This document shows, piece after piece, positions 2,663 through 45,039 of a stretch of DNA of 64,000 nt (its first letter is position 1; each line of letters starts with the position of its first letter). The notes beneath the pieces were generated by a model. It was not told the DNA's origin and did not search any database. It worked only from the letters and a program-made list of their open reading frames with translations. Source of the stretch: Eutreptiella sp. 'Long Island Sound 2002' (lineage: Eukaryota; Protista; Euglenida); assembly GCA_964036045.1 (NCBI GenBank), contig OZ038378.1:187984001-188048000 (forward strand). The letters run 5' to 3'. The translations under genes were made by a program, and so were the position numbers.

Positions 2663-5600
2663 GGGCCTGCGGTCACAGTTGGCTGCCGCCCGGGCTCTCC
2701 ACACGCTGGCGGGCTCCCTGTGTCACAGTGATGTTAATGAATCCGGGTATTGTACCATTGCACTGGCGGTGTCCATACCGGCTGCATTTCACGTCGTCTT
2801 TGCACTCGAAGCCCAAATTGGTCTTCACCGAACCGACGGCTACAACAAAACAACAACAACACCGCACATGTCCCCAGCTGTATCAGAATGAATCAATGGA
2901 AACAATCATGAGCAGCAGGGCCATCAAGCATCCTAAGCCTCGGACGACAACAGAATCCTACCACAGACCCGGATATGTTGGATCCCTTTCAGCTAAAGTA
3001 TGACTCAACCGTGGCACACCAGAGCTGGGTGGTACGGGGATGAGGATAAGGGACCTGGCACATGAGCAACTGGCACATCTGAGTGGAGCCAGAAGAACCT
3101 GATTTCTGCAGCAGTGAGGACTGACCTCAAGCATCCCAAATCCCTAACCAGGTCCATTCCTTCCCTTGACTTGTTGCACCGAAACGTCCTTTTGGCACTG
3201 GCCCCCATTGGGGGACGGTGAGTGGATTGATCTTTGTGCTGTGGTTGTGTTGCTGAGTCAAGGTGGGGCTGGAGTGCATGGTCGTCAGAGCAGGCTATTG
3301 GATCACACAACCCACTGTGAACACGGGATTAACCATGGTGGTGCTGGCAAGGACAGTTCAAGGGGAGCGGAGGGGACTCTCAGTCCAACATACAGCCAGT
3401 AGGCTTCATTTGGAACAGCAATTGCACACGTATCCCCTCATTTTGTCCATGCCACACTGAGTGATTCTGCAGGGTGATGACCATCGTCGCTTTATGGCCA
3501 AGCCGTGCTGAGTTGTGTATTGAGGATAGTGATATGGGCAAGTATCAATGGGGGTACAGCAGACTGTAGCACGGATGTCAGTGATAGTTGGTGTCTGATA
3601 GTGAGGAAGGGGTGATGAAAAAGCTCAGAAACAGCTTGCAGGGGCCCAGGGGCACCGAATGTGGACAATATCAAGGTAATTTTGGTTTTCTGAATGGTGA
3701 CAACCATCGCCTTTCTTATGGCCAAGCCACGACAAAACGTGCACACCTTCCCGTTGGCATCGGCTTACTTGGGCCCCATCTTCTTTGCTCATATGTGCAG
3801 GGGAGACTAGGGACAGACACGGGAAGTTGAGAACTAGACACCCATCCAAACCACATCACCCCTCACGACAACACCATCCGCAGTAGGTGGTTTTCAATGC
3901 TTGCTTGATCAAAATGAACACGGAAATTTGGAATCTAAGTGGGCCACAAACGGACATAGTGGAGCCCAAGATTGTGGGCCTATTACCCTGAGACAAGGAT
4001 GGCATGTGGTCTTTTTGACTTCTGATACTTGATATGACAAGGGTTATGCAACCATGTGAAAGCATATGCTTGTATTCTGGTTCATGTAGGCTACCTTTTT
4101 GGGGTGTGTCCTTTTGGGGGCCGTTTCCTAGTAACCACGTCAAAAGTGGCATGCCATGCATGCATAGAAATGACACTCCCTCTAAGGAAGCGCTCTGCGA
4201 GCAACTATGAGAACCCCAAACGGTTTGCAAGTAACCCCTCAGTGTTAGCCACATTACAGTGGTTAATCATCATTCACCATTTTCTCGATACATGGCGCAC
4301 TACCTTTTCTTTCGCAACTAGCATTCTTTCTTGCGCTCTGGTAGCACAGTGGGTGCAATGGGCCTAGTAGTTCCTGCAACCTGTCCTTGTATCAAATTCA
4401 GTTCATCCTCACTGTGTGTGATGTTTTCGCTATTAGGTTATTTTGTGATACAAGTGTAGCATTGCGTAGCTCTGATCGTTGACTCCTATAAGAGTGGTCC
4501 GCCAACTTTCCTAGGTCTAGAACCCTTTCTTCTGAGAAAAAAAAACAAGTCAATGAGCAAATATTTTTCAGTTTGTTCGGTTGATCGCAATTCTTTTCTT
4601 GTTCTTTCCCTTTACGTCAACAATTTTGGTCTTGCACTTTGGATTTTTGCCCCCTCTACATGGGGTGCTGCCTGTGCAATATGCGCGCGGTACAAGTATT
4701 TGGGTGTTAGGGCGGCCTGAGCACCCATTGTTTGAGTCAGTTGTGAGACAAAGTCCCAATTTGTTCGCCAACTACCACTCAAAGATGGTTGCCAATGTGG
4801 TGTTGCATGTTTCCATCCAATGAGGGATGGTGTGGGGTGGTTGCTTTCCCTGTTCCACTATCACCTATTGCATGCAATCACTATCTGTCCTCTGATGGGG
4901 GGCACTTTGTGCACCATGCACGCCTTGTAAAAGCTAGTGTGTATTGATGTGATTGTCCCACATTCCTCCCCACTTCCCCTACCTCATCTTACCCATTTCT
5001 TTCATTGCATAAACCATCTCAAACATTAATTGAATGACCTCTTCAGGCCAGCGACGACTGAATGTTATCTCATGCACCCTAGTAGAGTAGCCATGAGGAC
5101 ACACACGAAACAAGATGCACCCAGTAACACAGAAGGGAGGAAGGGGGCCAAGCATTGACTGCCTCGTGAGCAGTGGACACTATGGCCTCTACACCCGTAG
5201 ACTCAGCCACAGGCTACACCCGAGTTGCATTTTTAGGTTGCATACGGCCTTGACTTCGTCAAAATTGAACGTTTGACACGGGCTCTACCTGATTTGCATG
5301 GACATAGATATTGATCTGGCCCTGTTCCAACACAAGCAACGTGAAAGCAATGGGCTCATGCTTCACCTCATACACATGGAATGCACTTACCACGCTTGTT
5401 TTGTATGAATAGAGTCCATTTGAATATCACAGATGAAAGGCGCAACCAGGCAGCCTGAATTACTGGGAGTTGATACCTTCAGTAAGGGCTGAAATTGTCT
5501 ACTGTACAGGTATTCAATCAATCGTTGCTGACCACCAATCCCATAGCAGGTGTCTTTCACACATGCTGGTTTGCCCTCCACTTCAATGTTGTGGCTGATC

Positions 5601-5749
5601 AGCGGGCAGCTTCCTCTGTAGTATCACTTGAAGAATAGTGTCCCCTCTCTTTGTGAGGGGTCGGCCCATCTTAAAGGTACTACATGACTCTGGTCTTGCA
5701 CCACTGTGGAACAGATACCTCAACTAGAGAACTCACTTTCACAGCCGAT

Positions 5750-6850
5750 AGGTTGTGTCTCTGGAATACAAAAATATTTACTTTCTGCTTCATCATGGCA
5801 GGTGTCTTTAAAGATGTTGCTCCGATGGGTTGAAGAATCTCTACAATGGATTCTTTTCATGTTTTTGCATGTTGTGCCACAACCCATGGATATTGGGATG
5901 CAAACCTATGAGGAATGTGGGTGTGACAGCAGCACGTGCACGAGAACCACAACAATAGGGTGCATGCATGGGCTTCTTCATACTTGTGCATTGGGTTTGG
6001 GAACTACTTGGGCACCTGGACTTAGTCTTGTTGTGGGCTTCGTGGGGGGCGAGTTTTGTGGGCATTTGGAAGGGGGGGCAATTTGGAGGCTTTTGGGCGG
6101 AAAGTATGTTCCAAAAGTAGCTCGCAGTGCAAGGATTCTCCCACAGAAAAGGCAACAGAAAGTTGCCCCACATTTTCAAATGTGCCTTCCCTGCCCACAT
6201 GTCCTCCCCCGTTCTGTTGGATCTGCAGCCCCTAGTAAGGGAGTAAGGGTGCAGTGTGCCTGCGAAGCGGCCAGCCCGCATGGTGCATGGTGGAGCAAGT
6301 GCTTGTAACACACCTACCGCACAGTCAGAGCAACACTGAGGTCTTCCTCCATGAAAGACAACCAGTCAAACCCAATGCATATCTCTCTGGGACGGTGGGG
6401 AACATGCCAACACGGAGCGTTTTCAGGGGTCGGTGCAGTTGTTGCCTGATTTGTGCTCACTGAGTGTCCCGTAGGTAGGAGTATGTCGGGTATATTCGGA
6501 AAGCCCTTGAAAAGGGCTTTTCGGAGATGTATGGGTTAGGGGGGGGGGTCCGGAACCATACCCCTACCCCCATTATTCCAACATATGGGCATATGAGGGT
6601 CACGTCATTCAGGTGGATTTGTTGCATTTGATGAGTAGAAGACATGTGCAACATGGGTCCCCTCAAGACCCCAATATGTTGAAGACTTTGACCAATAACT
6701 ACGGTGATGCCTGGTGCAACTTGCAGCATCAAGCTCACCAGAGTGCAAGAAATCAAAGATGGCAGAATTTCTCAAACAGGCTGTCAAGTTGGGACATGAG
6801 ACCACAATATTTGGATTCAGCACGTCAAAATGCATCCATTTACCTCATTT
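5750..6850 (+). pseudogene. Highly decayed non-LTR (LINE-like) reverse transcriptase remnant
   Basis: Frameshifted fragments occur in the expected RT order: QGFSHRK (~6130, cf. QxGFR), GVR..LPPLF (~6546-6580, cf. GVRQGxPLSPLLF), GFVAFDE* (~6612-6637, cf. FADD). Many stops and indels. Confidence 0.4.
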
Positions 6851-7367
6851 CACTTTGCTCCAACTCCACAATATGTCAGAGCACCCAGGGGAAAACCTGT
6901 GAGTTGGTGTCCCGCACGCGTGAGCGGAGCAGGCTGAGGCCCAAAAACCCTGAAACGCCGAAAAGTTCGGCCTCGGTACTCAAAAATATGGTCACCTATC
7001 CCCCCCCAACCCATACATTTCTGAAACGGCCTTTTCTCACAGATTTCAAAAAGCATTCACATACCCCCCCCCCCCCCCCCAAGGTAACGACATTTTGGTG
7101 CATTGGACTAAAAGTTGAGAAAAACCGGGAAAAATGTGAATTTGCTCCGTGTTGGCATAAACCGAATGTCCCAGAGAGATATGGGTTGTGCCTGTGTGTT
7201 GATGCGTACACTTGTTGGGGCAAGACTTGTGTATGACGCTCAGTAGATGCCACATTTGTGCACTTTGAACACGGGGATTTGGTGTTCTGTCGTACTCCGT
7301 AGGGATGGTTTTGGGGTTGATTTCGCTGGTGGGGTCGCAGGGTTTTATTCTAGTTCCTCGCCAAATG

Positions 7368-7382
7368 TTTTTTTTTTTGCAG
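7368..7382 (+). promoter_or_regulatory. Splice acceptor (T11-GCAG) 3 nt upstream of ATG; candidate spliced-leader trans-splice site
   Basis: TTTTTTTTTTTGCAG|GACATG. Cis versus trans splicing cannot be resolved from DNA alone. Confidence 0.6.
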
Positions 7383-7385
7383 GAC

Positions 7386-9014
7386 ATGGCAGTCCGCTAC
7401 TGGAACTTAGTGCTCCTTCTGTTTGCTGTGACCTCCAGTGGCCATGCACCCGTGCGGCTGGATCCTGCCACCAACGTTTTGCATGGCAAGTTGGAGGTGC
7501 GGTGCACAGTGTCGGACTGCCCGAGGATGGCACAAATGCATGGGACCAAAGCGGTCACGGCGCAGCGCCGAACGCTGGTTCGGGGGAGCTTTTGGGCGGA
7601 CCCATTGCGCTCTGCAGTGCACGCACACCCAATCCCCAAGGCCCAACGAACACTTCCGTCACCGATACATTCGATCGCTGTTCTGCTGGATTGGCTGCTG
7701 CTTGTGGCTGGTCTGAGCGTCGTTGCTTTGCTGGCACGCCGCCTTCGGAGGCGGCGTGCTGTGGAGGCCGACGGCATGGCTTTCTATTGTGACGTTGAGG
7801 CCGAGCAGGGGCTCCTTGCCCTCGACGCCAGCCCGATTGCCCTTTTTGCTGCCTCTGGAAACCCGTCGCCTGATGCACATGGCAAAGGCAAGGGGCAGGG
7901 CAAGGGGCAGGGCAAGGGGCGGGGCAAGGGGCGGGGCAAGGGGCAGGGCAAGGGCAGGCGGAAGGGGCAGGGGCAGGGAAGAGGCGGCCGTGGCGTGGCT
8001 GTGGAGAAGAAGGTGGACGGGCCCATTTCCTCTGGAGCCCTCAGAACCCTCAACAGAGAGATCACGGCGGTGCAGGGCTTCTTTCACAACTACTTCCCGG
8101 TCCGCAAGGGAGGGTTCCCCATGACGTCCGGCAACCGGGACGACCGCAGTCAAGTCCTCGCTCTCGATATCGAGACGTTGCGCGTGGAGGGCAATGACCG
8201 CTGCCCGTCCCGTGTGTCGCTGGTGTCGTTGACAGGAGGCGTGCTTCTGGATGAGTTCGTGCAGCCCCCGGCCCCGGTCGTGCAGTACGGGCTGCTCAGT
8301 GGCATCACAGAGGAGCAGGTCATGGGGGCCGAGCTGACGCTGGTGGAGGTGCAGGAGAGGGTGCGGCAGCTGGTGAGCAGGGACGATTGGCTGGTGGGCC
8401 ACGCGCTCCACTGGGACCTGCAGTACATCGAACTCCAGCACCCCATCAAGAAGGTCATCGACACGGACCACCTCTTCCGCCTCCCGTCCATCCCGGGCCG
8501 CTCCTTCCCGCTGAGGGACGTCCACGAGACTGTGCTGGGGCAGTCCATCGACGCGCACGACAGCGTGTGTGACGCCGAGGCGTGTCTGGCATTGCTCTTG
8601 GATGTGGCCGACAAGCAGTCGGCTGGTGCCCGAGGCCCTTGGCTGCCGGACCTGCCTCCCGTGGCCGGCCGCACGCTCTACGTCGGGGGGATTCCGCTGG
8701 GCGCCGAGGCTGACGTCGTTACGTCCCTGCTCCCAGCGGACGTGCCGTTCCGGTTGCTATATCCTGGGCTGCCCCCGGATGTCGAAAGTGACCTCGATCC
8801 CCTCCGCTTTGATCCGGGGAAGCAGAAGGGCAGGACACGGGTTCTCTTCCAGTGCCGGGAGCATGCGTGGCGAGCCTTCAAACAGCTCCCGGAGGGAGAT
8901 GGCCTGTCTTACAGTGCGTTCTCTGGCGACTGCAGCCGCTCCATCCCGCTGGGCTCGGACCCGGACAACGTGCTGAGGTTCACAATCATAAGCCTGCACC
9001 CCCCAAAGTTGTAG
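7386..9014 (+). CDS. DEDDh 3'-5' exoribonuclease (REXO1/SDN-like) with C-terminal RRM-like domain and tripartite N-terminal targeting leader, 542 aa, intronless
   Basis: ExoI LALDIET, ExoII LVGHALHWDL, ExoIII HDSVCDAEA. RRM-like TLYVGGIP...KGRTRVLF..REHAWRAFKQL. N-terminal hydrophobic signal, second TM helix (aa 97-117) followed by RRLRRRR, and GKG repeats at aa 166-203. The ATG at 7386 is preferred over the track start at 7305. Confidence 0.88.
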   Translation: MAVRYWNLVLLLFAVTSSGHAPVRLDPATNVLHGKLEVRCTVSDCPRMAQMHGTKAVTAQRRTLVRGSFWADPLRSAVHAHPIPKAQRTLPSPIHSIAVLLDWLLLVAGLSVVALLARRLRRRRAVEADGMAFYCDVEAEQGLLALDASPIALFAASGNPSPDAHGKGKGQGKGQGKGRGKGRGKGQGKGRRKGQGQGRGGRGVAVEKKVDGPISSGALRTLNREITAVQGFFHNYFPVRKGGFPMTSGNRDDRSQVLALDIETLRVEGNDRCPSRVSLVSLTGGVLLDEFVQPPAPVVQYGLLSGITEEQVMGAELTLVEVQERVRQLVSRDDWLVGHALHWDLQYIELQHPIKKVIDTDHLFRLPSIPGRSFPLRDVHETVLGQSIDAHDSVCDAEACLALLLDVADKQSAGARGPWLPDLPPVAGRTLYVGGIPLGAEADVVTSLLPADVPFRLLYPGLPPDVESDLDPLRFDPGKQKGRTRVLFQCREHAWRAFKQLPEGDGLSYSAFSGDCSRSIPLGSDPDNVLRFTIISLHPPKL

Positions 9015-33614: not shown

Positions 33615-34430
33615 AGAAAAGTTTATAGTGTTTTCAGCACTGTGTTTTTGCTTCTCCTGCTGCTTGTTGTTGCTGTAGGGTGTCCTGCTGCTGGTTTTGG
33701 ATGATGAAAAGCTTTTGTTTGTTGAAATACAATAAAGCCAACTCAATCCAGGATAGCCCAAGCCAATAGTATGCAAGGAGAAGGTAATTCAGGATCAAAG
33801 CATGAAGGGCTGCAGTGTACACAGTGAAAGATGATTAGATATTCACAGAAACTGCAACTCAGGATACAAATGAATGCTTATTCACAGAGATAGCTGAAAT
33901 GTTTTGGGAAAAGAGTTGGAAAACTGCCTCAGGTTCACTCTCTCTCCATAGTGCCATCTTAGGAGATGTGCACTCTTTGTTTTGGCTCCCATATGTGCTG
34001 AGGTGGCATGGTATGTGGCGATGAGGTCACTGCCATGTCACATGGGATCTTCCTACTTAGTTGGGATCTTCCTACTTAGTTAGGCTGACCAGGAATTGAA
34101 CCCAGGACCTCTCAAAAAGAGGTGCCTAACCCCCTATGGTGCATACCACTAGGGCAGATAAGTATTCATGGAAAAACATAGATAAATTCATAGGCTCTAC
34201 CTTAGGTATGTCAGTGCTCAGTCAACTCAGGAAAAGATGTTTTACTTCTGATTGAAAGGGGATTAAGGGGTCCACTCCATATCCTGATTGGGTGTTTGGT
34301 TCCATAGGTCAAAATGTGTTCTCACCACTTTTGGCTGGACCAATACTAAGATAAAATGCATGGATGCTCAGTGCATCTCTAATACAACTAGAGTATGTCC
34401 CAAAGCAATGGAAAAGCACTTTTTCTTACT
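33615..34430 (-). repeat. 3' LTR (816 bp), termini 5'-AGTAAG...CTTTTCT-3'
   Basis: Boundaries are fixed by LTR-LTR identity, the TSD and the adjacent PPT. Confidence 0.95.
34083..34140 (-). other. tRNA-derived segment inside the LTR (A-box-like, hairpin, B-box/T-arm); also at 44691-44748
   Basis: TAGGGGGTTAGGC-ACCTC TTTTTGA GAGGT-CCTGGGTTCAATTCCTGGTCAG. GGTTCAATTCC fits the B-box, but there is no acceptor-stem pairing, so it is not called a tRNA gene. Confidence 0.6.
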
Positions 34431-34438
34431 CCCCCCTT
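34431..34438 (-). other. Polypurine tract (AAGGGGGG)
   Basis: Immediately 5' of the 3' LTR on the element strand. Confidence 0.85.
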
Positions 34439-36693
34439 GTGCTGTGGTGGCCACCACTGTCGCATCTTAGGAAAAAGGGAATTTTTCTTGGCCTTTCCTT
34501 GGTTTCCACATCTACTTTAAAATACCTACAGTCTCCCTCACACTGAAAAATGGGCGCTCACCATGGCTGGCGTCCTTTTGCTGCTCTGATTGTACAGTTT
34601 CCTACAGAAGACTCAGCGCTCTTGGCGCTGCCGGGGCTCCTGTGGCTTGGTTGGGTTAGATTGGGAGCATGCCAAACATGTGCATATGCATCCCTTCCTC
34701 CAAGACGCAGCGTCGACACAACCCAAACGCAAGACACATTATACACACTCGCATGGGTTCTCGTAAACCTGCTGGCGACCTGTGACCTGTCTTAGGGCGT
34801 AGGGAGTCGAAAAGGAATTAATTTGCCCCTTGGTGGGGTCTTGGTTCTGCTCAGTCTCTCCAGGCACCTGCGTTTCGGCCTGAACACGGCCTACTCAGCG
34901 AGGCTGCGCGTGGGTATCTGCAGAGGCAGGAATGGGAGAATTATGGACGAATCCACGCAAAAACGAAGCGACAACAACAAAATCCGTCAAATGACGGCGC
35001 AGAATTTTTCTGAAACGACACACCTGAGCAGAATCCAATTGTGCATCTTCAGCACATTTTTATAGAAATTATAGTCATCTCTGGATTTTTTAAGTCCAGA
35101 AATTCATACGCATAAAATGGCGGCGCGCAGGAGCGGCTCCTAGCGAAGCGCCGGAAAATGGAAAAATAATGGAATTATAAACGTATGTATCACGTAGTCT
35201 TGAAAATGACGAGACACACATTAATAAACAAACATACAGATTCCACCCACACTAAAAGAAGCTTCAAAAATTCAAGAATTCGAAAATCAATTGAAAAGAC
35301 TTCAATGAATCAGGTATAAACTACAGGTATGCTCGTCTTGCATGCCGCATACACATTGCTCGTCTCGAGTCTCCGTGACCGAGTCGTGTAGCAGCGTTAA
35401 CAACGATAACCACGATAGAACGCGGTAGAGGGATTGATTAGAAAGATTGCAGATGATTAGCGGTCAGATCAGGGTGATTAGTCATACACACAAGTGCATA
35501 GCAACGTTCTTCGCGTGCGCCCCTCTCCTTGCTTCACTTCCCAGCGGTAGGTAAGGTAGGTACGCCCAGGCGGGGCCACCCCCTGGTGGAGTCAAGATTG
35601 TCGTGGAGATGGGCAGGTTTGCCCACGTGATCGTGCATAGTCGTGCATGCACACACGCATTAAAGGGTAGGCCACGCGAAGTGCGCACGGTAAACCTTGT
35701 TTAGGCTACCCAGGGGCTCCTCGGTACGTTCTTTAAGAGAACCTGAGGAGTCCCTTAACGCTTGCTTGCTTGATAAGGGTAGCTGCTCCATGCAGCGTGT
35801 TTGCGGACAGCGTATTATAGGGCACACTGAGAAGGGTATAATACCTGGAGTGTGCCTTGGTTCCTCCGCCGCAAACGCCCTTTCATTTGCCTTTGTTTTA
35901 CAGGTGGGCAGGTAGGGTGAGTGGTGCAGCAGCATTTTTTTTTATGCCCTGCTAAACAGGGGCGCAGATCACACAAACAAGTAACTCCGCTCCGCCTGTG
36001 GCAGAGCAGGGAGTCCGACTTCATCGACATCTGCGCCTTGCACACGAGAGCACTCCTTCCCTCCAAGCCCTTGCAGGGGAAACGCGTTGTGGCGTCCCCT
36101 GTGAGGCCACAGTTGCTTAGCAGCGCTGTGTTCTCTTGTCATTTCACAGGTGGGTCGCTAGGACCCTCGAGAACTTCCTCTTCGCAACGCCAAGTAGAGT
36201 GTGCGTGTAGGAGTGGTAGTCCTGCGTGGGGGCTAGAGCCAGTTGCCCAGCGCTCGCCCACCAGGATGGTGCCACTGTAGGGTGTGTAGGACCTGTAGGG
36301 GGCGTGTCACTGTCCCACCCTTTTCCTGCAATTTTAGCTGGGTTGGTGGGCTGTGACAGTGGGTTAGGCTAGTGTTTTTGGCCACATAGCAAACAGGCGT
36401 TTTGCATGCCTTCATAGCTTTTGGCCACCCCTCCCTGTAGTAGACAGGTAGGTAGGGAAAACAATACCTGGATTAACACTCTGGGTATTCCCCCAAGGTT
36501 TTGCGCCAGCACAGAAATTGGGCGCATAGGGGAGGGGAGACCCGGGGCGTACCCCGTGGCATCAATAAGCCAACCCTCCAGGTTCAGCAAGGGCGCAGAC
36601 TTGGGTATAATTAGGACACCACTTCTGCGGCTTGCTCTCAGGACCTTAGGACTAGCACACTCACACATACGCTTTGGCAGGTAAGGGTAAGGT

Positions 36694-39600
36694 TCAGTCC
36701 CTAGCTTTATTCTTGGAGGCAAGCATCTCAGCGAGCCTCAACAACTCACCAAGGTTGTTCTGGGACAAGTAGTCAACCAGAACTGAGTTTAGGCGTCCCT
36801 CAGGTAGAACAAATGCAGAGAAGGGCTCCCAGGTGGCCTCTTCGACTCCAAACCCTTCCCAGAGGGTGAGGAAGCGCCAACCCTGGCGATAGCGGTGGCG
36901 TAGGACAGACTTCACCAGGTAGAAGCCCTCCTTAGCCATCTCCTCGGCGTTCATGTCGGGGAGTTCACCTTCAACTTCCATAGGGCTGGCAGCCCCTTGT
37001 AGGTCCAGAGCGGCGATTTCCTCGTCGTTCAGCTCCCACTCCTCCCCACAGAGGTCTTCAGGATCATGGTAGCGCTTCAGGTGTTGAGCGGCGCACACCA
37101 GGGTCCCCCCTAGACGGGGAGAACATCGCACGGTGATACGGTGTCCATCCACAGATAGGATCTTGTACGGCCCGAAGTATGGGTCATCGCTGGTAGAGCG
37201 TGGCCAGGCGGGTAGTCGACTGTGGTGCACCAGCACCCAGTCCCCTTCTTGGTAGGTGGCCGGTACACGGTGCTTGTTCTTCTTGTTCCACTGACGCTCC
37301 CTCACTCTCTGGAGCATAGCCTTGGCCTTGTCCACCTTCGCTTGTTGCTCTTGGACCCATTCACCCACAGAAGAATGGGTGTCCTCTGGATAGGGGGCAT
37401 GTAGGAACCATGCCGGGCGCCCCATGAACAGCTCATGTGGCGAGTAGCCAGTAGCTGAACTCTCTTGGGAGTTCATCATCAAGGATATGACGGGGAGTAG
37501 TCTCACCCAGTCTCTGGTGCGTTCAGTTTTGCACCATATCCTGACGTTCTCCTTCAGGACACGAATCTGTCGCTCACATAGGGGGTTGCTCGTGTGAGAG
37601 TAGGGAATCCCCGTAGACACCTGGACATTGAGGGACCTCAGGACCCTCTTGTACCAGCCAGTATCTGAGCGTACTCGTACGTCCTCATCGGAGTTGATCT
37701 CCTTGGGCGCCCCATAGACACAAAACCACTCCTCCAGGAGTATCTTGATAGTCTCCTCTCCGGTAATGTGCTTGGTACATGGGAACACCCTGGTAAACCT
37801 GGTCAACCCACAGGTTACCACGAGGGCGAAGTCATAGCCCCCGAACTTCGGCATCTCCGTGTAGTCCACGTATAGAACACTGTTAGCACAGTGAGGGATG
37901 GGCAGGGTCGAGTAGAGACCTCTGTCCCTGATATCCCCTGGTTTACAGGACCTGCACGGGCACTTGTCCACGATAGGCAGGAGCGTCTTCCGCAGCTGGT
38001 CGTCAGTCCACGTAGTGTGGAACCACTGCTTGAACAGCCTCAGGGTACGGTCAGCACCCACATGACCACTGGACTCATGGGTCCACTTCAGCAGCGCTGG
38101 GACTCGGTCACTAGGCACCACGATGCGGTCCTCGTGCCAGAGGTAGCTCTTGTCCCGCTTCCACTGGTCTTGGTTGACCAGGAGGGGTTCAAGGCGTTTC
38201 TCCAGGCGCCGGTAGATATCCCCAAACTCCTGTAGGTACTCCGATTGTTGGAGTCCATCCAGGGGGCGTATCATGGTCATGTTCAGGTCCAGGTGTACGT
38301 CCATACGGCTGAACGCTTCCTTAGCCAGCGCTTCAGACCGGGCACCAATCAGGGCGTCGAAGTTGTTGCGGCTGATGTAGTCGGCACACTCGTTCTTCAC
38401 TCCCTGGATATGGTGTACCGTCAGCCGTAGTTGACTGAGGTAGGTCCACCAGCGACGTAGCTTGGCCTTCTCAGGTGGGGGGCCCTTCTGGAAACTGCGG
38501 ACCGGTTCTTGGTCGCATAGCCAGACCACAGGGTTACTCCCCAACAGTCGTGCTTGTGAGGATAGCACCAGCATACCCGCGAGCAGTTCCTGCTCATAGG
38601 TGGAGTAGTTCCCTCTGGCCTGGTTCCACTTCCAGTTCCAGTGGCCCAGAGGTACTAGGACCCACTTGTCGTCAGGGTAGCTGTGCTTGAGGGTTCCATC
38701 TCGGTTGAGACCTTCCGTCCCCCATTGGGAAATGGCCGAGTCGAACTCCTCCTTCTCTAGTGCTTGCCATTGGAACAACGTTCCACCACCGCCCACATTG
38801 CTGGCGTCGGTCACCAGGATAATCTCCCCTTGTGCCCTAGGCACGCCCAAGCACTTAGCGTTGGCTACCTTGTCTTTGAGCTCGTCAAACGCTTGTTGCT
38901 CTTGTGGGCCCCAGCGCCAAGTAGTACTCTTCTTGATCAAGTCAGTCAGTACCGCGCTGGTGTAGGTGAAGTTTTTGATGTGGCGGCGATAGAAGTTGCA
39001 CGCCCCAATGAAACTGCGTACATCATGAAGTCCTTTCTTGGGGTCTTCGTGTCGTACCTTGGCATCCATCAGGGGTTTGGCCTTAGAGGCCGCTGGGGTC
39101 CACCACCCATAGCCAACGTCAAACCCCAGGTACTGCATGGTCTCCTGCATGAACTCACACTTCTCCAGCTTGAGTCGTGTGTGGTTCTCCTGGCAGACCG
39201 CAAAGAACTCACCCAAGAGGATTAGGTGATCCTCCTGGGTATTGGTCCCTAGGCATACATCGTCGATGTGAGCCTCCATCTGGGCCCCACGGGATATGAG
39301 CTCCTGCACCTTAGGTCTCCGTCGTAGGATGGACAAGATCTTGTTCATCAGCTCTTGGAACAGAGCGGGGGCGTTAGCCACGCCGAATGGCATGACCTTC
39401 CACTTGAATACCCTCCCCTGAGGGGTGATGAAGGCCAGTAGTTCCTGCGCGTTGGGCGTCAGGTCCACTTGCCAGAATCCACTTCGCTTGTCCATCTTGG
39501 TCTTGTAGCGACAGGAGGCTATCTTCTCCAGGGTAGACTCCATATTGGGAATGGACCCTGAGTGGTTCAGCGTCTTCTTGTTCAGCTCTCCATAGTCTAC

Positions 39601-41622
39601 TACCAGCCGTTTGGCTGTAGACCCAGGTTTAGCCACCAGGAAACAGGGGCTGCAGTGTAGGGGGTAGTCCCCATCCTTGTACTCCAGGACTAGGCCAGCG
39701 TCGATACATTCTTGTATCTGTCGCTCAATCTCGTCGGCCTGCTCTTTAGGAGCTGGATAGGGTCTCCTCCGGATCTTGTGACCCACGAACTCGGGTTTCA
39801 GCTTGAGGTCCATCTGTACCAGCTTGTCGCATGAGGCTGGAGGGGGTAGTTCTCCGAACACCTCCAGATAGGTCCTTATCAGCTTTTGTACCCGCGGGTC
39901 CAGTACCTTGATCTTGTCCTCCATGTCCTCGTCGGAGTGTAAGTTGCTTGCCCCTTGAATAGACGTCGGGAGGTGGTCCTCCACCGACTCTTCGCCCGCG
40001 GTAGCATCCTTCAGCCCTTGGTAGGCATACAGAAGGTCTTGCTCAACCATCTCCGGTGGACGATGGCAACATAGGCACGCTTTAGGGGGTTCACATACAC
40101 ATTCCTCCGAGAGGTCGTCCTCATCTGGGGTCCTCACATGGGCACCCCATACGCTCTTCATGAGCTTGAGATCTACCTCCCTTTGCCAGGTGGTGATCTT
40201 CTGTTCGAGGTCCTCCTTCAGTTGGGATAGGTCTCCCATACGTCCTTGCTTCAGTGGCCACGAGCTGCGGGTAGGCTTCGCGTAGCATAGCTTTTTCGCC
40301 ACCAACTTCCTCTTGGAATCCACATACTCCCTGAGCCTGGATCTAGGGTCCAGCTCTTCATCCACGGGGTCTTCCACCCTCATGGAAAGTAGGGGTTTTA
40401 GTGGGGCGACGTACTCGGCGTTCTCCACTTCTTCCACCGCAGTCTGCACGAAGAAGGCGTCGTGCTCAGTTTCGTCGTCTGAGTGGATAGAGCTAGGTAG
40501 CTCAGATAGTCCACACTCAGAGACTCCATCAGGAACAGGTACATGACAGGGAGAGTTGGGGGCGTTGGTGTCAGTCACGACGTACTCATCTCCTCCGGGT
40601 GTAGTTTCAACAGCATCTTGAGGTCGTAGGCGATCCTTCAAGTCACCCAAGGCGAGTCCATCGCTTTCTCGTTGTATAGCCTGGACCAGAGTAGGGTCCA
40701 GGTCTTCCCAGGGGATGGTGGTAAGACTTCCGTCCACCACGCTGAGCATACTCCCCCATCCGGGCTTCCCAATGGGCGTCTTGCGTCCCAGAGGCACGTA
40801 GATGGCCTCATCAGGTAACCGCACAGAGCTGATAGTCAGCTTGTCAAGGAGGGTTCGCCAGTACTCGTTGCCCCCATGGGCTCCCCAATCGGGGGAACAC
40901 AGGACCATACGGGAACGTTCCAAGGCCACCTTGGTCAGCACCTTCCCCAGTTCACTGAATCTGGGGTTCCCGTAGGCCATCCCGAAAGAGGGCCAGTAAA
41001 ATTTGTAGCTGCAGTTCTTCCCCTTGCTGCAGTATAGGTCCAGTACATGCTGCTTGTCGCTGGCGAACAGTTCCACACTTAGGTCTTCTCGAGAGTAACC
41101 CAACTCCTTCAGACCTTGGTCTAGGACTTCCCCCAATAGTTGATAGTCCTCAGTTTTGGAGGCCGCCATCATGTTCGAGGGCTCCTCCTTCGATAGTCTC
41201 AGGTAACTCGAGGTATGTTCCGACTGCTCCAGTGGCACAGACTCTCTGCCACTGCCGTGGTCCACGTACAGGAGGTAGGGCGCTTGCAGCGTCAGGGATT
41301 GTATCTGGGAGTGCTGCACGAAGAAGTCAGTACCCAGTACAAAGTCGAAGGCATCAGTGTCCATCACATAGAACCGATGGGCGATAGTCTTGGAGCCCAT
41401 AGGTACCTCCACTTCGCAGTCCCCGCAGCTGTGCACCACATGTCCATCCCCCATCCGTATAGCGGCGGTGGTCATGGTGTTCTTCAGGCTCCCACAAGGT
41501 AAAATTTTCTTGGCCACTATCGATATTGTGGCTCCAGTATCCAGTACCCCCAGGTATTCACGTCCCCCTAGTCGGATACGTACCCAAAACACCAGGTCTT
41601 GGGTGCCACCAGAGCGTCCCCG
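36694..41622 (-). CDS. pol: Pol: protease - amino-MTase-like domain - spacer - RT - RNase H - integrase - chromodomain; in frame with gag after one UGA
   Basis: LDTGA (PR); VELFAS/YGNPRF/LCSPDW (MTase-like); KMDKRSGFWQ, MPFGVANAP, HIDD (RT); TDAS, EQELLA, CDQ, ADYISR (RNH); HESSGH..CPCRSC, YVDY, NSDED, LCERQ, GPY (IN); FYLVKSVL..WEGF..EATWEP (chromo). Open from the codon after the gag stop. Confidence 0.95.
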   Translation of the reverse strand, partial: RGRSGGTQDLVFWVRIRLGGREYLGVLDTGATISIVAKKILPCGSLKNTMTTAAIRMGDGHVVHSCGDCEVEVPMGSKTIAHRFYVMDTDAFDFVLGTDFFVQHSQIQSLTLQAPYLLYVDHGSGRESVPLEQSEHTSSYLRLSKEEPSNMMAASKTEDYQLLGEVLDQGLKELGYSREDLSVELFASDKQHVLDLYCSKGKNCSYKFYWPSFGMAYGNPRFSELGKVLTKVALERSRMVLCSPDWGAHGGNEYWRTLLDKLTISSVRLPDEAIYVPLGRKTPIGKPGWGSMLSVVDGSLTTIPWEDLDPTLVQAIQRESDGLALGDLKDRLRPQDAVETTPGGDEYVVTDTNAPNSPCHVPVPDGVSECGLSELPSSIHSDDETEHDAFFVQTAVEEVENAEYVAPLKPLLSMRVEDPVDEELDPRSRLREYVDSKRKLVAKKLCYAKPTRSSWPLKQGRMGDLSQLKEDLEQKITTWQREVDLKLMKSVWGAHVRTPDEDDLSEECVCEPPKACLCCHRPPEMVEQDLLYAYQGLKDATAGEESVEDHLPTSIQGASNLHSDEDMEDKIKVLDPRVQKLIRTYLEVFGELPPPASCDKLVQMDLKLKPEFVGHKIRRRPYPAPKEQADEIERQIQECIDAGLVLEYKDGDYPLHCSPCFLVAKPGSTAKRLVVDYGELNKKTLNHSGSIPNMESTLEKIASCRYKTKMDKRSGFWQVDLTPNAQELLAFITPQGRVFKWKVMPFGVANAPALFQELMNKILSILRRRPKVQELISRGAQMEAHIDDVCLGTNTQEDHLILLGEFFAVCQENHTRLKLEKCEFMQETMQYLGFDVGYGWWTPAASKAKPLMDAKVRHEDPKKGLHDVRSFIGACNFYRRHIKNFTYTSAVLTDLIKKSTTWRWGPQEQQAFDELKDKVANAKCLGVPRAQGEIILVTDASNVGGGGTLFQWQALEKEEFDSAISQWGTEGLNRDGTLKHSYPDDKWVLVPLGHWNWKWNQARGNYSTYEQELLAGMLVLSSQARLLGSNPVVWLCDQEPVRSFQKGPPPEKAKLRRWWTYLSQLRLTVHHIQGVKNECADYISRNNFDALIGARSEALAKEAFSRMDVHLDLNMTMIRPLDGLQQSEYLQEFGDIYRRLEKRLEPLLVNQDQWKRDKSYLWHEDRIVVPSDRVPALLKWTHESSGHVGADRTLRLFKQWFHTTWTDDQLRKTLLPIVDKCPCRSCKPGDIRDRGLYSTLPIPHCANSVLYVDYTEMPKFGGYDFALVVTCGLTRFTRVFPCTKHITGEETIKILLEEWFCVYGAPKEINSDEDVRVRSDTGWYKRVLRSLNVQVSTGIPYSHTSNPLCERQIRVLKENVRIWCKTERTRDWVRLLPVISLMMNSQESSATGYSPHELFMGRPAWFLHAPYPEDTHSSVGEWVQEQQAKVDKAKAMLQRVRERQWNKKNKHRVPATYQEGDWVLVHHSRLPAWPRSTSDDPYFGPYKILSVDGHRITVRCSPRLGGTLVCAAQHLKRYHDPEDLCGEEWELNDEEIAALDLQGAASPMEVEGELPDMNAEEMAKEGFYLVKSVLRHRYRQGWRFLTLWEGFGVEEATWEPFSAFVLPEGRLNSVLVDYLSQNNLGELLRLAEMLASKNKARD

Positions 41623-44124
41623 TCAGAACTCCGCGGGACAGGTCACCTCGAACCCCTTGTTCCGCAATTTGCGGGCCATCCTCATGAAACGGCTTCTCTT
41701 CTTTGCGTTGCCGTCGTCACCACCTTCATGCTCACGCTTGGCTCCTTGTTCTTGCTGGGCCTGCGTCTGTGAGCGTGTGGTAGGTCCAGACTGCCCTCCA
41801 GAGGGCTCGGAGTTCCCCCCTGGATTAGGGTTGGGGTTACCTCCGTTCTTGTCCTTGTTCTTGTTGTCGTTCTGGCGATTAGCGCCTCCTCCTCGTCCGC
41901 CTTGACCCTTGTCTTGACCACCTTGACCACGTCCTTTCGACTTGCCCTTGCCGGAGTCGTTGCCTTTGGCCTTGCCTCCACCTTTGCCTGAGCTTTTGCC
42001 AGGATCTTCCCCCTTAAGCTTCGCCGATAGGCGTTGCTTATGGTAGCACTCGTCCTCATAGTGCTTCCGCTTACCGCGGAATGCACACGTGATGGTGCAG
42101 CGGTAATGATCCGGCATCTTCACCTTGGCGCCGGTGATCTTTTCCTGCTGCTTCCCCTGGACAACAAAGCAGTCTCGCTGCTCGCAGTCGGAGGCATGCT
42201 GCAGGTGGCCCTGTTCATCTCTGGCATCACACCAGAATAGCTCCTTCACGTTCTCCATTAGGCGGGCGTGGGCGTGTTTGGGGGTAGTCCCCTGCCCAGG
42301 TCGGGACCCTTGGTACCCTTTACCTCCAGAACCTCCACCGCCAGGACGGTAGTGGTTCAGGTGTTGGTCGCTCTCCTTCTCCAGCGCCATCTCCAGGAGC
42401 AGCACGCATAGATCCTCGTAGCGGAGGGATCTAGCCTTGCGCTCAGCCGTCAGACGGCACTCGTCCCATAGCTCACGGGGGAGCTTGGAGCACAACCAAA
42501 ACAGCAGGTCGTCGCTGCTGTAGGAACCGGGCGTCAGTCGTCCAGCCCAGTGGTCCAGGTCCGCCAACAGCTCGGAGACCCTGCCGGGTTTGGGGTTGTT
42601 CGGCAGCACGGGCAGGTTCTGGATCTCGGCCCTGATGGAGAGGTCGGTCTCGTAGGTTGGATACTGCCTCTCCAGGGCAACCAACACGTCGGCAAAGGTG
42701 GCGGAGTTGGTGACGATCTGCCTGACCTGCTTCTCCAGGTACTTCGTCTTGCAGCACTGCAGGAGCAGGTCGCACTTCACTCGCCCACTCGCGTGGGTTT
42801 GGCCGGTCAGTCGTAGGAACCGGCCAAAGTTCTCAGCGAACTCGCTGAGGTCCTTGCCTGTGAATTCAGGCAGGTTTACCACAATCTTGGAGGTGGCAAT
42901 AGCCTTCGCCTCCTGAGCTCGGCGTCCTTCAGGGCGTCGGGTCTTCTTCTTCTTCTTCTTCTTCTTCTTGCCCTTGGGGTCCTCGGGGTCCTCAGGGTCT
43001 TCGTCATCCGATGGCGAAGAAGAAGTCATCGAAGGCGGCCCATCATCGGAGGGGTCTCCGCCTAGATCACTGGAGCCATAAGGCTCCACGTCCACCATAG
43101 CTCTTAGGGCTGTCAGCCCCAGCTGGTCCAGCTCGGCCCTCGTCGAGTTCGTCACGTGACTGTAGGGCGGCTGGGCTGTCCTCGGGACGAATGGGCTTCT
43201 TGGTACTGCTGCAGGAGTCGGCATCGGTCGGCTCCTCAGGCTCCCCAGGGTATTCGTCAACCCTGCCGCCAGGTGGTTAGCCTGTACTCGGTGGGGTGAC
43301 ATCCCCACTGTCGTAGGTGACGCATGGGACGGGATCATCAGGGGCTGCAGCTTCTCCCTGATCTCTTGCGTGAGGTCGCTCACGATTTTCGAAGTGGCTC
43401 CTTGGAGCACCTCGTTGATCTCCGACCGCGTCAGGGACCTGTTGGAGGATCTTCCCGATCCTCTACTCCTGCCTCCCAGAGACTCTGGTCCTCTCCTCAA
43501 CCCACTCAGGGGTGCATACCCAGGTGCACACCCAGGAGCATACCCAGGAACTTCCATGTAGGTTCCAGTGGAGTGAAGTGGATGGGGATGGTCAGCCGCA
43601 TACCAACGCGGCGCAGAGCTGGAAGCCACCGGCTCACTGGCAGTAGTTGCCTCAAGGAGCGCAGTGGTAGGTGGGCCCATGCCATAGGCGGGGTAGTGAG
43701 GCATGCCAGTAAAGCCTGTGCCCTCTGCCATAGGCTGGTTGGTTGTGGAAGTGGATGTAGCGGCGGCTGGGTGTGTGGTGGTTATGGGAGAGGGTGATGC
43801 TTGGAGGCCAGAAGCGCTTGGTGCGCCTTCGAAGGTAGGGATATCCGTCGGGTCTTGCCCTTGCTCCTCTCCTTCGTCTGTTCCTTCTCCAGCATCCTTC
43901 TCGCTCTCGTTTCCTCTCTTCCTCTTCACAGGCTGAGGCTGAGAGACCATTTCCTTCACCGACAGGGCCCCAAAGGCCGTCTGGAGGCCATCCAAGGAGT
44001 CCTCCGCCGTATCCATTGGCCCATGTAAGGGCTCCACCGAAGGTACAGCGTCAGGCGCCGGCCTTGCCGGTGTCTCTGGCGCTGGCGCTGTGTTCACCTC
44101 GGCGTCCACTCTTCCTGGATCCAT
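41623..44124 (-). CDS. gag: Gag polyprotein, 833 aa
   Basis: ATG ~100 nt from the 5' LTR; poly-Lys tract; capsid-like region (NLPEFTGKDLSEFAENF); knuckle CAFRGKRKHYEDEC; G/K-rich tail; TGA at 41625-41623. Confidence 0.9.
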   Translation of the reverse strand: MDPGRVDAEVNTAPAPETPARPAPDAVPSVEPLHGPMDTAEDSLDGLQTAFGALSVKEMVSQPQPVKRKRGNESEKDAGEGTDEGEEQGQDPTDIPTFEGAPSASGLQASPSPITTTHPAAATSTSTTNQPMAEGTGFTGMPHYPAYGMGPPTTALLEATTASEPVASSSAPRWYAADHPHPLHSTGTYMEVPGYAPGCAPGYAPLSGLRRGPESLGGRSRGSGRSSNRSLTRSEINEVLQGATSKIVSDLTQEIREKLQPLMIPSHASPTTVGMSPHRVQANHLAAGLTNTLGSLRSRPMPTPAAVPRSPFVPRTAQPPYSHVTNSTRAELDQLGLTALRAMVDVEPYGSSDLGGDPSDDGPPSMTSSSPSDDEDPEDPEDPKGKKKKKKKKKTRRPEGRRAQEAKAIATSKIVVNLPEFTGKDLSEFAENFGRFLRLTGQTHASGRVKCDLLLQCCKTKYLEKQVRQIVTNSATFADVLVALERQYPTYETDLSIRAEIQNLPVLPNNPKPGRVSELLADLDHWAGRLTPGSYSSDDLLFWLCSKLPRELWDECRLTAERKARSLRYEDLCVLLLEMALEKESDQHLNHYRPGGGGSGGKGYQGSRPGQGTTPKHAHARLMENVKELFWCDARDEQGHLQHASDCEQRDCFVVQGKQQEKITGAKVKMPDHYRCTITCAFRGKRKHYEDECYHKQRLSAKLKGEDPGKSSGKGGGKAKGNDSGKGKSKGRGQGGQDKGQGGRGGGANRQNDNKNKDKNGGNPNPNPGGNSEPSGGQSGPTTRSQTQAQQEQGAKREHEGGDDGNAKKRSRFMRMARKLRNKGFEVTCPAEF

Positions 44125-44210
44125 CTTAATCCACCCTTCTGCTTTTGTTTGCCTGCTCGGAGCACTGGTTGTACGGCGCGGGGTCGCTGCCGGTGCACAG
44201 AGACAGGCTG

Positions 44211-44223
44211 CCTCTTGCTACCA
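44211..44223 (-). other. Primer-binding site TGGTAGCAAGAGG (initiator-Met tRNA-like), overlapping the LTR by 1 nt
   Basis: Begins with TGG. Matches the recalled eukaryotic tRNA-iMet complement TGGTAGCAGAGG with one extra A; the host tRNA sequence was not available to check. Confidence 0.7.
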
Positions 44224-45039
44224 GAAAAGTTTATAGTGTTTTCAGCACTGTGTTTTTGCTTCTCCTGCTGCTTGTTGTTGCTGTAGGGTGTCCTGCTGCT
44301 GGTTTTGGATGATGAAAAGCTTTTGTTTGTTGAAATACAATAAAGCCAACTCAATCCAGGATAGCCCAAGCCAATAGTATGCAAGGAGAAGGTAATTCAG
44401 GATCAAAGCATGAAGGGCTGCAGTGTACACAGTGAAAGATGATTAGATATTCACAGAAACTGCAACTCAGGATACAAATGAATGCTTATTCACAGAGATA
44501 GCTGAAATGTTTTGGGAAAAGAGTTGGAAAACTGCCTCAGGTTCACTCTCTCTCCATAGTGCCATCTTAGGAGATGTGCACTCTTTGTTTTGGCTCCCAT
44601 ATGTGCTGAGGTGGCATGGTATGTGGCGATGAGGTCACTGCCATGTCACATGGGATCTTCCTACTTAGTTGGGATCTTCCTACTTAGTTAGGCTGACCAG
44701 GAATTGAACCCAGGACCTCTCAAAAAGAGGTGCCTAACCCCCTATGGTGCATACCACTAGGGCAGATAAGTATTCATGGAAAAACATAGATAAATTCATA
44801 GGCTCTACCTTAGGTATGTCAGTGCTCAGTCAACTCAGGAAAAGATGTTTTACTTCTGATTGAAAGGGGATTAAGGGGTCCACTCCATATCCTGATTGGG
44901 TGTTTGGTTCCATAGGTCAAAATGTGTTCTCACCACTTTTGGCTGGACCAATACTAAGATAAAAATGCATGGATGCTCAGTGCATCTCTAATACAACTAG
45001 AGTATGTCCCAAAGCAATGGAAAAGCACTTTTTCTTACT
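44223..45039 (-). repeat. 5' LTR (817 bp)
   Basis: Matches 33615-34430; one extra A in ATAAAAATGC. Confidence 0.95.

Follow-up and report, generated by a model that had tools for sequence, protein, structure and literature searches.

The role of the Dam or methyltransferase (MT) domain carried by some retrotransposons has been an open question since the DIRS elements. In DIRS1-like elements the domain order is reverse transcriptase (RT), RNase H (RH) and MT, the function of the MT being unknown (PMC3266345); the MT thus follows RNase H, in elements with a tyrosine recombinase and with inverted terminal repeats or split repeats (PMC3266345). In May 2026, Fernandez-Moreno et al. reported Dam domains in non-DIRS long terminal repeat (LTR) retrotransposons, called 'DAM-LTRs', which are attributed to at least four independent transfers from DIRS (bioRxiv 10.64898/2026.05.21.726589). 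That preprint describes DAM-LTRs that bear a chromodomain, a mixed DAM-LTR/DIRS group in Euglena gracilis, and 'EpiLTRs' that combine Dam, DNMT and a chromodomain; it also reports that DAM-LTR insertions carry more N6-methyladenine (6mA), with enrichment in the E. gracilis DAM-LTR set, suggests an RNA:DNA hybrid as the substrate, and proposes that the domain helps elements to exploit permissive chromatin marked by 6mA (bioRxiv 10.64898/2026.05.21.726589). Here we analyze a stretch of 64,000 nucleotides, referred to below as the window, from the euglenid Eutreptiella sp. 'Long Island Sound 2002' (GenBank assembly GCA_964036045.1, contig OZ038378.1, positions 187,984,001 to 188,048,000). The window contains an LTR retrotransposon whose Pol polyprotein includes a Dam-type domain between protease (PR) and RT, and the motif IV of this domain reads Asn-Pro-Arg-Phe (NPRF) instead of Asn-Pro-Pro-Phe (NPPF).

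This element resembles the DAM-LTRs, which often have a chromodomain, in being a Ty3/gypsy-like LTR element, in having a DIRS-derived Dam within its polyprotein, and in residing in a euglenid host with 6mA. It differs from them in having Asn-Pro-Arg where almost all of the preprint's DAMs have Asn-Pro-Pro, and in falling outside the operational criterion of the preprint's screen, which was hmmsearch at E<=1e-5 (bioRxiv 10.64898/2026.05.21.726589). With respect to the EpiLTRs, the element differs in having no DNMT domain by Pfam; an EpiLTR reading was considered and rejected, since Pfam finds no cytosine-5 DNMT family in either Pol or Gag. The domain shares its family and its motif order with the MT of DIRS elements, and its nearest models in the ESM Atlas are animal RT-RNaseH-Dam polyproteins, but here it is placed between PR and RT, and the element has LTRs and a DDE integrase. 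That integrase is of the rve type, and no tyrosine recombinase is matched by Pfam in Pol. Taken as a whole, the element is very probably a full-length, recently active, chromovirus-like Ty3/gypsy retrotransposon of the DAM-LTR class, with a Dam-derived domain between PR and RT.

An earlier note on this DNA, made from its letters alone, had proposed that positions 40723-41151 encode an amino-methyltransferase of the Dam or DIRS type, within an otherwise standard Pol and in an architecture that its author did not recognize. The minus-strand translation of this interval is as quoted there, and it is in frame within the 1632-residue Pol open reading frame (ORF). The NPRF motif was also correctly located, at 40968-40957. 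The positions assigned to VELFAS, 41073-41059, encode ELFAS; the valine codon begins at 41076, so the full motif occupies 41076-41059 of the minus strand. The module sits between protease and RT in a Pol for which Pfam gives the order PR-RT-RH-integrase (IN)-chromodomain, the match to the chromodomain being weak. The novelty of this architecture, on the other hand, is refuted, since DAM-LTRs have already been catalogued (bioRxiv 10.64898/2026.05.21.726589). Novelty is also countered within the same genome by a second gypsy-like family (locus L050, C8:59947000-59956999; ORF 2816-8122, minus strand), whose 1768-residue Pol has a Pfam-detectable Dam at residues 489-558, with the motif NAPF, upstream of RT-RH-integrase. 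An ORF adjoining this pol upstream contains a CCHC zinc knuckle. What is new is the NPRF variant kept by selection, a real but moderate addition: its contribution lies in fixation under selection, in invisibility to profile screens, and in the presence of an NPPF sister family alongside it.

Profile searches do not identify the domain directly. By itself, it has no match to Pfam or PHROGs at E<=1, nor to PDB sequences by phmmer; a PDB search with the family profile returned only a spurious antibody chain, and the whole Pol has no match to PF05869 (Dam) even at E<=1. A word-indexed protein search returned near-identical proteins only, two of which were traced to this genome. An exhaustive phmmer search of 1.84 billion representative proteins, however, gives 448 proteins that match the domain at E<=0.001. 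NPPF-bearing relatives are matched at E 1e-20 to 1e-45, and relatives at 34-48% identity have the consensus VDLFAS...N...LYC..NSA..W...ANPPFS..VLTKVALE...TPDW. The motif order of the DIRS-type MT, DLFA ... W ... NPPF ... vL.K ... P.W, is present in the window domain, as ELFA and NPRF at the two variant blocks. Since the same conserved blocks recur among the 448 proteins, the motif order noticed earlier is not due to chance.

The relatives, in turn, connect the domain to known methyltransferases. Among 25 such relatives, 16 match PF05869 (best E 1.2e-6), with scores of 15-24 bits compared with a gathering cut-off of 28.1 bits; one relative matches PHROGs phrog_111, 'DNA methyltransferase', and one weakly matches PF12237. 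The NAPF family of the same genome is positive for PF05869 at 40-45 bits, above the curated cut-off, and a profile of the superfamily of the window domain matches this family at E of about 1e-18. Direct BLASTP of the window domain against the NAPF family gives E 1e-5, with NPRF aligned on NAPF. With respect to the phage and bacterial Dam of PF05869 (the T1-type DNA N6-adenine methyltransferase), the window domain has the same fold and core motifs; the relatives cover only profile positions ~30-105 and the window domain itself is below detection; and the window domain differs in having NPRF rather than NPPY/F and in being embedded in a polyprotein.

Structure prediction provides a second line of evidence. 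An AlphaFold (AF2) model of a 201-residue query, computed with 30 family sequences, has a mean predicted local distance difference test score (pLDDT) of 87.8 and a predicted template modelling score (pTM) of 0.84; pLDDT exceeds 89 in 10-residue blocks across query residues 21-190. Among solved structures, the top match by VIA is PCIF1 (6irx; Z 9.1, root-mean-square deviation (rmsd) 3.1 Å over 130 residues), followed by DIMT1/KsgA/Erm (Z ~7.3), EcoDam (6.5), T4 Dam (6.3) and TaqI (6.3), so that the matches are almost only N6-adenine enzymes; Foldseek against PDB returns the same set. A search of BFVD ranks phage DNA N6-adenine methyltransferases first (E 2e-7 to 2e-5, TM-score by target up to 0.76), and giant-virus PCIF1-like proteins are also among the viral matches. 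In the ESM Atlas, the closest models belong to eukaryotic RT-RNaseH-Dam (DIRS-type) polyproteins and to phage Dam, with TM-scores of 0.57-0.65 and rmsd of 1.8-3.1 Å, and the Atlas feature search agrees with the Dam reading while also listing a PCIF1_WW cluster. The model thus predicts a class-I Rossmann methyltransferase fold like that of phage Dam, and the structural comparison proposed in the earlier note does return Rossmann-fold N6-adenine methyltransferases. PCIF1/CAPAM and KsgA/Dim1/Erm, which are the best solved-structure matches and which all have an N-x-P-aromatic catalytic loop, differ from the window domain in that sequence identity is 10-15% and in that they act on RNA and carry additional domains. 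In KsgA and Erm it is the second residue of the motif that varies (N-I/L-P-Y), whereas in the window family it is the third.

By this chain of sequence homology together with the predicted fold, the domain descends from the phage-type Dam methyltransferase (PF05869), which DIRS elements carry as well. The identification first made from motif order, as a Dam/DIRS-type amino-methyltransferase with a Rossmann fold, is therefore correct.

We now turn to the origin of NPRF. Alignment of the fetched relatives bears out that NPRF stands in place of a canonical NPPF: the third motif residue is Arg (Arg211 in the window copy) in a single clade, and Pro in all the others. In a maximum-likelihood tree rooted on the NAPF family, the Arg clade comprises 18 rows with support 100/98 and is nested deep within NPPF clades. 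The proline-to-arginine (P-to-R) change is therefore a single derived event at the base of this clade. The Arg clade keeps every other position that is conserved in the superfamily, the catalytic Asn and the aromatic Phe among them, and its only clade-specific differences are P-to-R and an Ala-to-Gly change at the residue before the Asn (position -1). Two further candidates in the VDLFAS...N block, D-to-E and N-to-Q, were rejected as specific to the NPRF clade, since the NPPF sister clade has both.

In order to count the motif across the genome, we used 30 bases flanking the Arg codon as a motif context, along with a reversed control. The context has 4,209 matches, compared with 0 in the reversed control, and the first 100 matches listed contain AGG in 64 cases, AGA in 32, other codons in 4, and Pro in none; the same context with CCN has 0 matches in the genome. 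Genomic copies of this family thus have NPRF as the rule, and the alignment of the wider superfamily has NPPF.

The strength of selection on the domain was assessed by the ratio of nonsynonymous to synonymous substitution rates (dN/dS) between the window copy and three copies of other NPRF subfamilies, at synonymous divergences (dS) of 0.7-0.95. These comparisons of individual genomic copies give a dN/dS of 0.06-0.10 for the Dam-like domain, 0.07-0.11 for the protease, and 0.14-0.21 for the first part of the linker that follows the domain (aa 301-460). The domain is thus as constrained as the protease, and it stayed under strong purifying selection long after P-to-R. The Arg at this position is kept by selection as well, with a codon that varies synonymously between AGG and AGA. 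The fixation of Arg and the purifying selection add interest to the earlier note's idea of a catalytically altered module.

The family itself is a very abundant, young Gypsy-type element. Across the 217 aa of the domain, no fewer than 150 copies in the genome show 100% identity, and 113 of 150 have the full 1642-residue frame; at 90% identity, the protein belongs to a cluster of 6,186. Three estuary metatranscriptome runs contain contigs of up to 2 kb, ~99% identical to the element and spanning gag, PR and the domain, with no difference within the NPRF codons.

The nearest NPPF clade is also a large young family in the same genome, with 2,855 motif-context matches and Pro in 96 of the first 100 matches listed. 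This family and that of the window share one architecture, with an overall Pol identity of 55%; RT-RH-IN is visibly more alike between the two than PR-DAM-linker is, a contrast which suggests either unequal rates or recombination between families. The domain of the NPPF family matches PF05869 at only E 0.02. In one copy of this sister family (L053, C7:4826500-4836400; ORF 3648-8426) the motif reads NPPL. More generally, all of the superfamily retains the PR-DAM order, in clades of only 34-48% identity. It is also found beyond this genome, in an environmental contig of 7.9 kb (L039, JGI metagenome 3300002026) that has gag, PR-DAM (with NPPF) and RT-RH-IN-chromodomain in the same order. In that contig PR-DAM (500 aa) and RT-RH-IN-chromodomain (1038 aa) are called as separate ORFs ~210 nt apart; this could mean that PR-DAM is a unit of its own in that element, or that the copy has suffered damage.

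What, then, does the domain do? Given its constraint, we infer that the element depends on the domain in order to propagate. The adenine/S-adenosylmethionine (SAM) pocket is most likely still used, because the Arg clade keeps the catalytic Asn and the stacking Phe, along with every other position conserved in the family. The domain is translated within Gag-Pol, past an in-frame UGA. Our best guess is that it acts in cis, either on intermediates of the element's replication (cDNA or RNA:DNA hybrid) or on newly made insertions. Together with the chromodomain it would then bias the chromatin state of the new copy, in line with what the preprint proposes for DAM-LTRs. Pocket use could take two forms. 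We tentatively favor an N6-adenine methyltransferase whose catalytic loop is non-canonical, without great confidence; a domain that uses the pocket for binding, with little turnover, seems unlikely. A broader claim, that P-to-R produced a neofunctionalized Dam (with altered chemistry, altered substrate, or binding of adenine or 6mA) on which the most abundant young retrotransposon family depends, is possible but doubtful.

Several points weigh against our reading of the element and its domain. The window domain has no direct profile match to PF05869, PHROGs or PDB, and its membership in the family depends on transitive homology and structure. The dN/dS values derive from individual genomic copies, some of them decayed, and not from reconstructed masters. 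Contigs in RNA libraries are weak evidence and do not prove transcription. Active amino-methyltransferases hardly ever vary the second Pro of (D/N)PP(Y/F/W), and catalysis may therefore have been lost with P-to-R. According to the preprint, Asn-Pro-Pro holds in almost all DAMs, and no 6mA was produced in E. coli even by eukaryotic DAM domains of the canonical type (bioRxiv 10.64898/2026.05.21.726589).

These considerations lead to the alternative that survives best, namely that P-to-R ended methyl transfer and left a catalytically dead scaffold, which would serve the polyprotein only structurally or by binding other proteins. The domain might, for instance, recruit host AMT1 or chromatin factors, or aid the folding or processing of Gag-Pol, in a manner similar to METTL14 beside METTL3. 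In favor of this are the Arg in place of the near-invariant second Pro of motif IV and the inactivity in E. coli of canonical DAM domains from transposable elements (bioRxiv 10.64898/2026.05.21.726589); the strong constraint fits any essential role. Against this, the Asn, the stacking Phe and the other conserved positions are kept across subfamilies at dS ~0.9, and the adjacent Ala-to-Gly change resembles a local adjustment more than it does decay. METTL14 (EPPL) and other known dead paralogues have lost the catalytic Asn/Phe residues, which also counts against a dead scaffold here. We rank a pure scaffold role second to use of the pocket, and consider it somewhat unlikely.

A more specific possibility is that the loop was retargeted from DNA adenine to the element's RNA (a cap-adjacent or internal adenosine, as for PCIF1) or to an RNA:DNA hybrid. 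Among solved structures the top match is PCIF1, an RNA cap m6Am methyltransferase, and the giant-virus PCIF1-like matches, the weak PF12237 match of one relative and the PCIF1_WW Atlas cluster agree with it; a hybrid substrate is, moreover, suggested by the preprint itself (bioRxiv 10.64898/2026.05.21.726589). Nevertheless, phage DNA Dam and DIRS-type domains match equally well or better in the libraries of predicted structures, and a shared fold does not give the substrate, so we regard a change of substrate as improbable. Finally, the domain could be a neutral passenger, a relic on a successful element whose conservation reflects the youth of its copies; most copies are indeed nearly identical, so that conservation within the family is uninformative alone, but this is very hard to reconcile with a between-subfamily dN/dS equal to that of the protease (0.06-0.10 at dS 0.7-0.95), with an Arg codon that varies synonymously between AGA and AGG, and with a PR-DAM arrangement kept across clades of 34-48% identity and in the environmental contig.

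Whichever use is made of the pocket, this genome offers a natural contrast: thousands of young copies, in sister families with a shared architecture, one with NPPF and the other with an NPRF maintained by selection. The pair amounts to a natural test of whether the domain writes 6mA and whether the catalytic loop matters. If the NPRF domain is indeed neofunctionalized, then the pair would directly show the role of transposon-encoded Dam domains.

There is also a consequence for genome surveys. Screens with hidden Markov models (HMMs) at E<=1e-5 miss most of the PR-DAM lineage; therefore, DAM-LTR counts and 'DAM-lacking LTR' control sets may be off in euglenids. Since the window family and most of its superfamily fall below that threshold, the family was probably not scored as DAM-LTR in the preprint, and its thousands of copies would have been treated as LTRs without Dam. 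If this is true, the published comparison of DAM-LTRs with non-DAM-LTRs in Euglena would have taken thousands of cryptic DAM copies as controls.

The features of the element are collected in Table 1. Its two LTRs, of 816 and 817 nt, are 99.9% identical by blastn, with a single 1-nt indel. Counted from the gag TGA, the open frame of pol is 1642 aa. Because this TGA is in frame with pol, Pol is presumably made by readthrough of the gag UGA stop codon. In the interval 41575-41640, a single in-frame TGA followed by CGG divides gag from pol.

Table 1. Features of the retrotransposon in the window, in window coordinates
Feature	Coordinates	Strand	Basis or remark
Complete LTR retrotransposon, 11,425 bp	33615..45039	-	Flanking direct repeats; gag and pol between
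5' LTR (element orientation)	44223..45039	-	blastn of the two flanks
3' LTR	33615..34430	-	blastn of the two flanks
gag ORF, 833 aa	41623..44124	-	Ends TGA then CGG, in frame with pol
pol ORF, 1632 aa counted from first GTG	36694..41592	-	Open frame begins just past gag TGA, 10 codons upstream
Aspartic protease, LDTGAT, Pol aa 1-95	41308..41592	-	Pfam gag-asp_proteas/RVP, E 2.7e-4 to 7e-4
Dam/DIRS-type methyltransferase-like domain, Pol aa 147-324	40621..41154	-	AF2 model, structure matches, PF05869 chain, dN/dS
Motif I-like strand VELFAS (family consensus VDLFAS)	41059..41076	-	Strand E44-48 in model
Motif IV NPRF (family consensus NPPF)	40957..40968	-	Alignment and genome census
Linker, ~330 aa	39634..40620	-	No recognisable domain
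Reverse transcriptase, Pol aa 654-825	39118..39633	-	PF00078, E 3.9e-28
RNase H, Pol aa 894-1054	38431..38913	-	PF17919 and PF17917
Integrase core, Pol aa 1234-1332, H2C2 zinc finger before it	37597..37893	-	PF00665, E 4.1e-7; PF17921, E 0.007
Chromodomain, weak, Pol aa 1558-1590	36823..36921	-	PF00385, E 0.013, 15.8 bits, below 25.1 cut-off

Several parts of the element lack profile matches. Gag has no Pfam match, and neither has Pol between residues 96 and 653; for the ~330-aa linker within that span, which has no Pfam domain, the ESM Atlas feature search stayed below its recognition threshold and yielded no informative match. The chromodomain region has the typical aromatic pattern in its sequence, although its PF00385 score is sub-threshold. 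The interval between the pol stop and the 3' LTR (34431-36693, ~2.26 kb) is unusually long for the 3' region of a Ty3/gypsy element, and it contains no ORF of at least 120 aa on either strand.

The estuary contigs cover gag and pol but leave 44248-44643, within the LTR, almost bare. One of them enters Illumina adapter just after 44218, five bases inside the boundary between LTR and internal region. The bare LTR and the adapter junction could mark the end of a transcript or cDNA, or could merely reflect the assembly of repeats.

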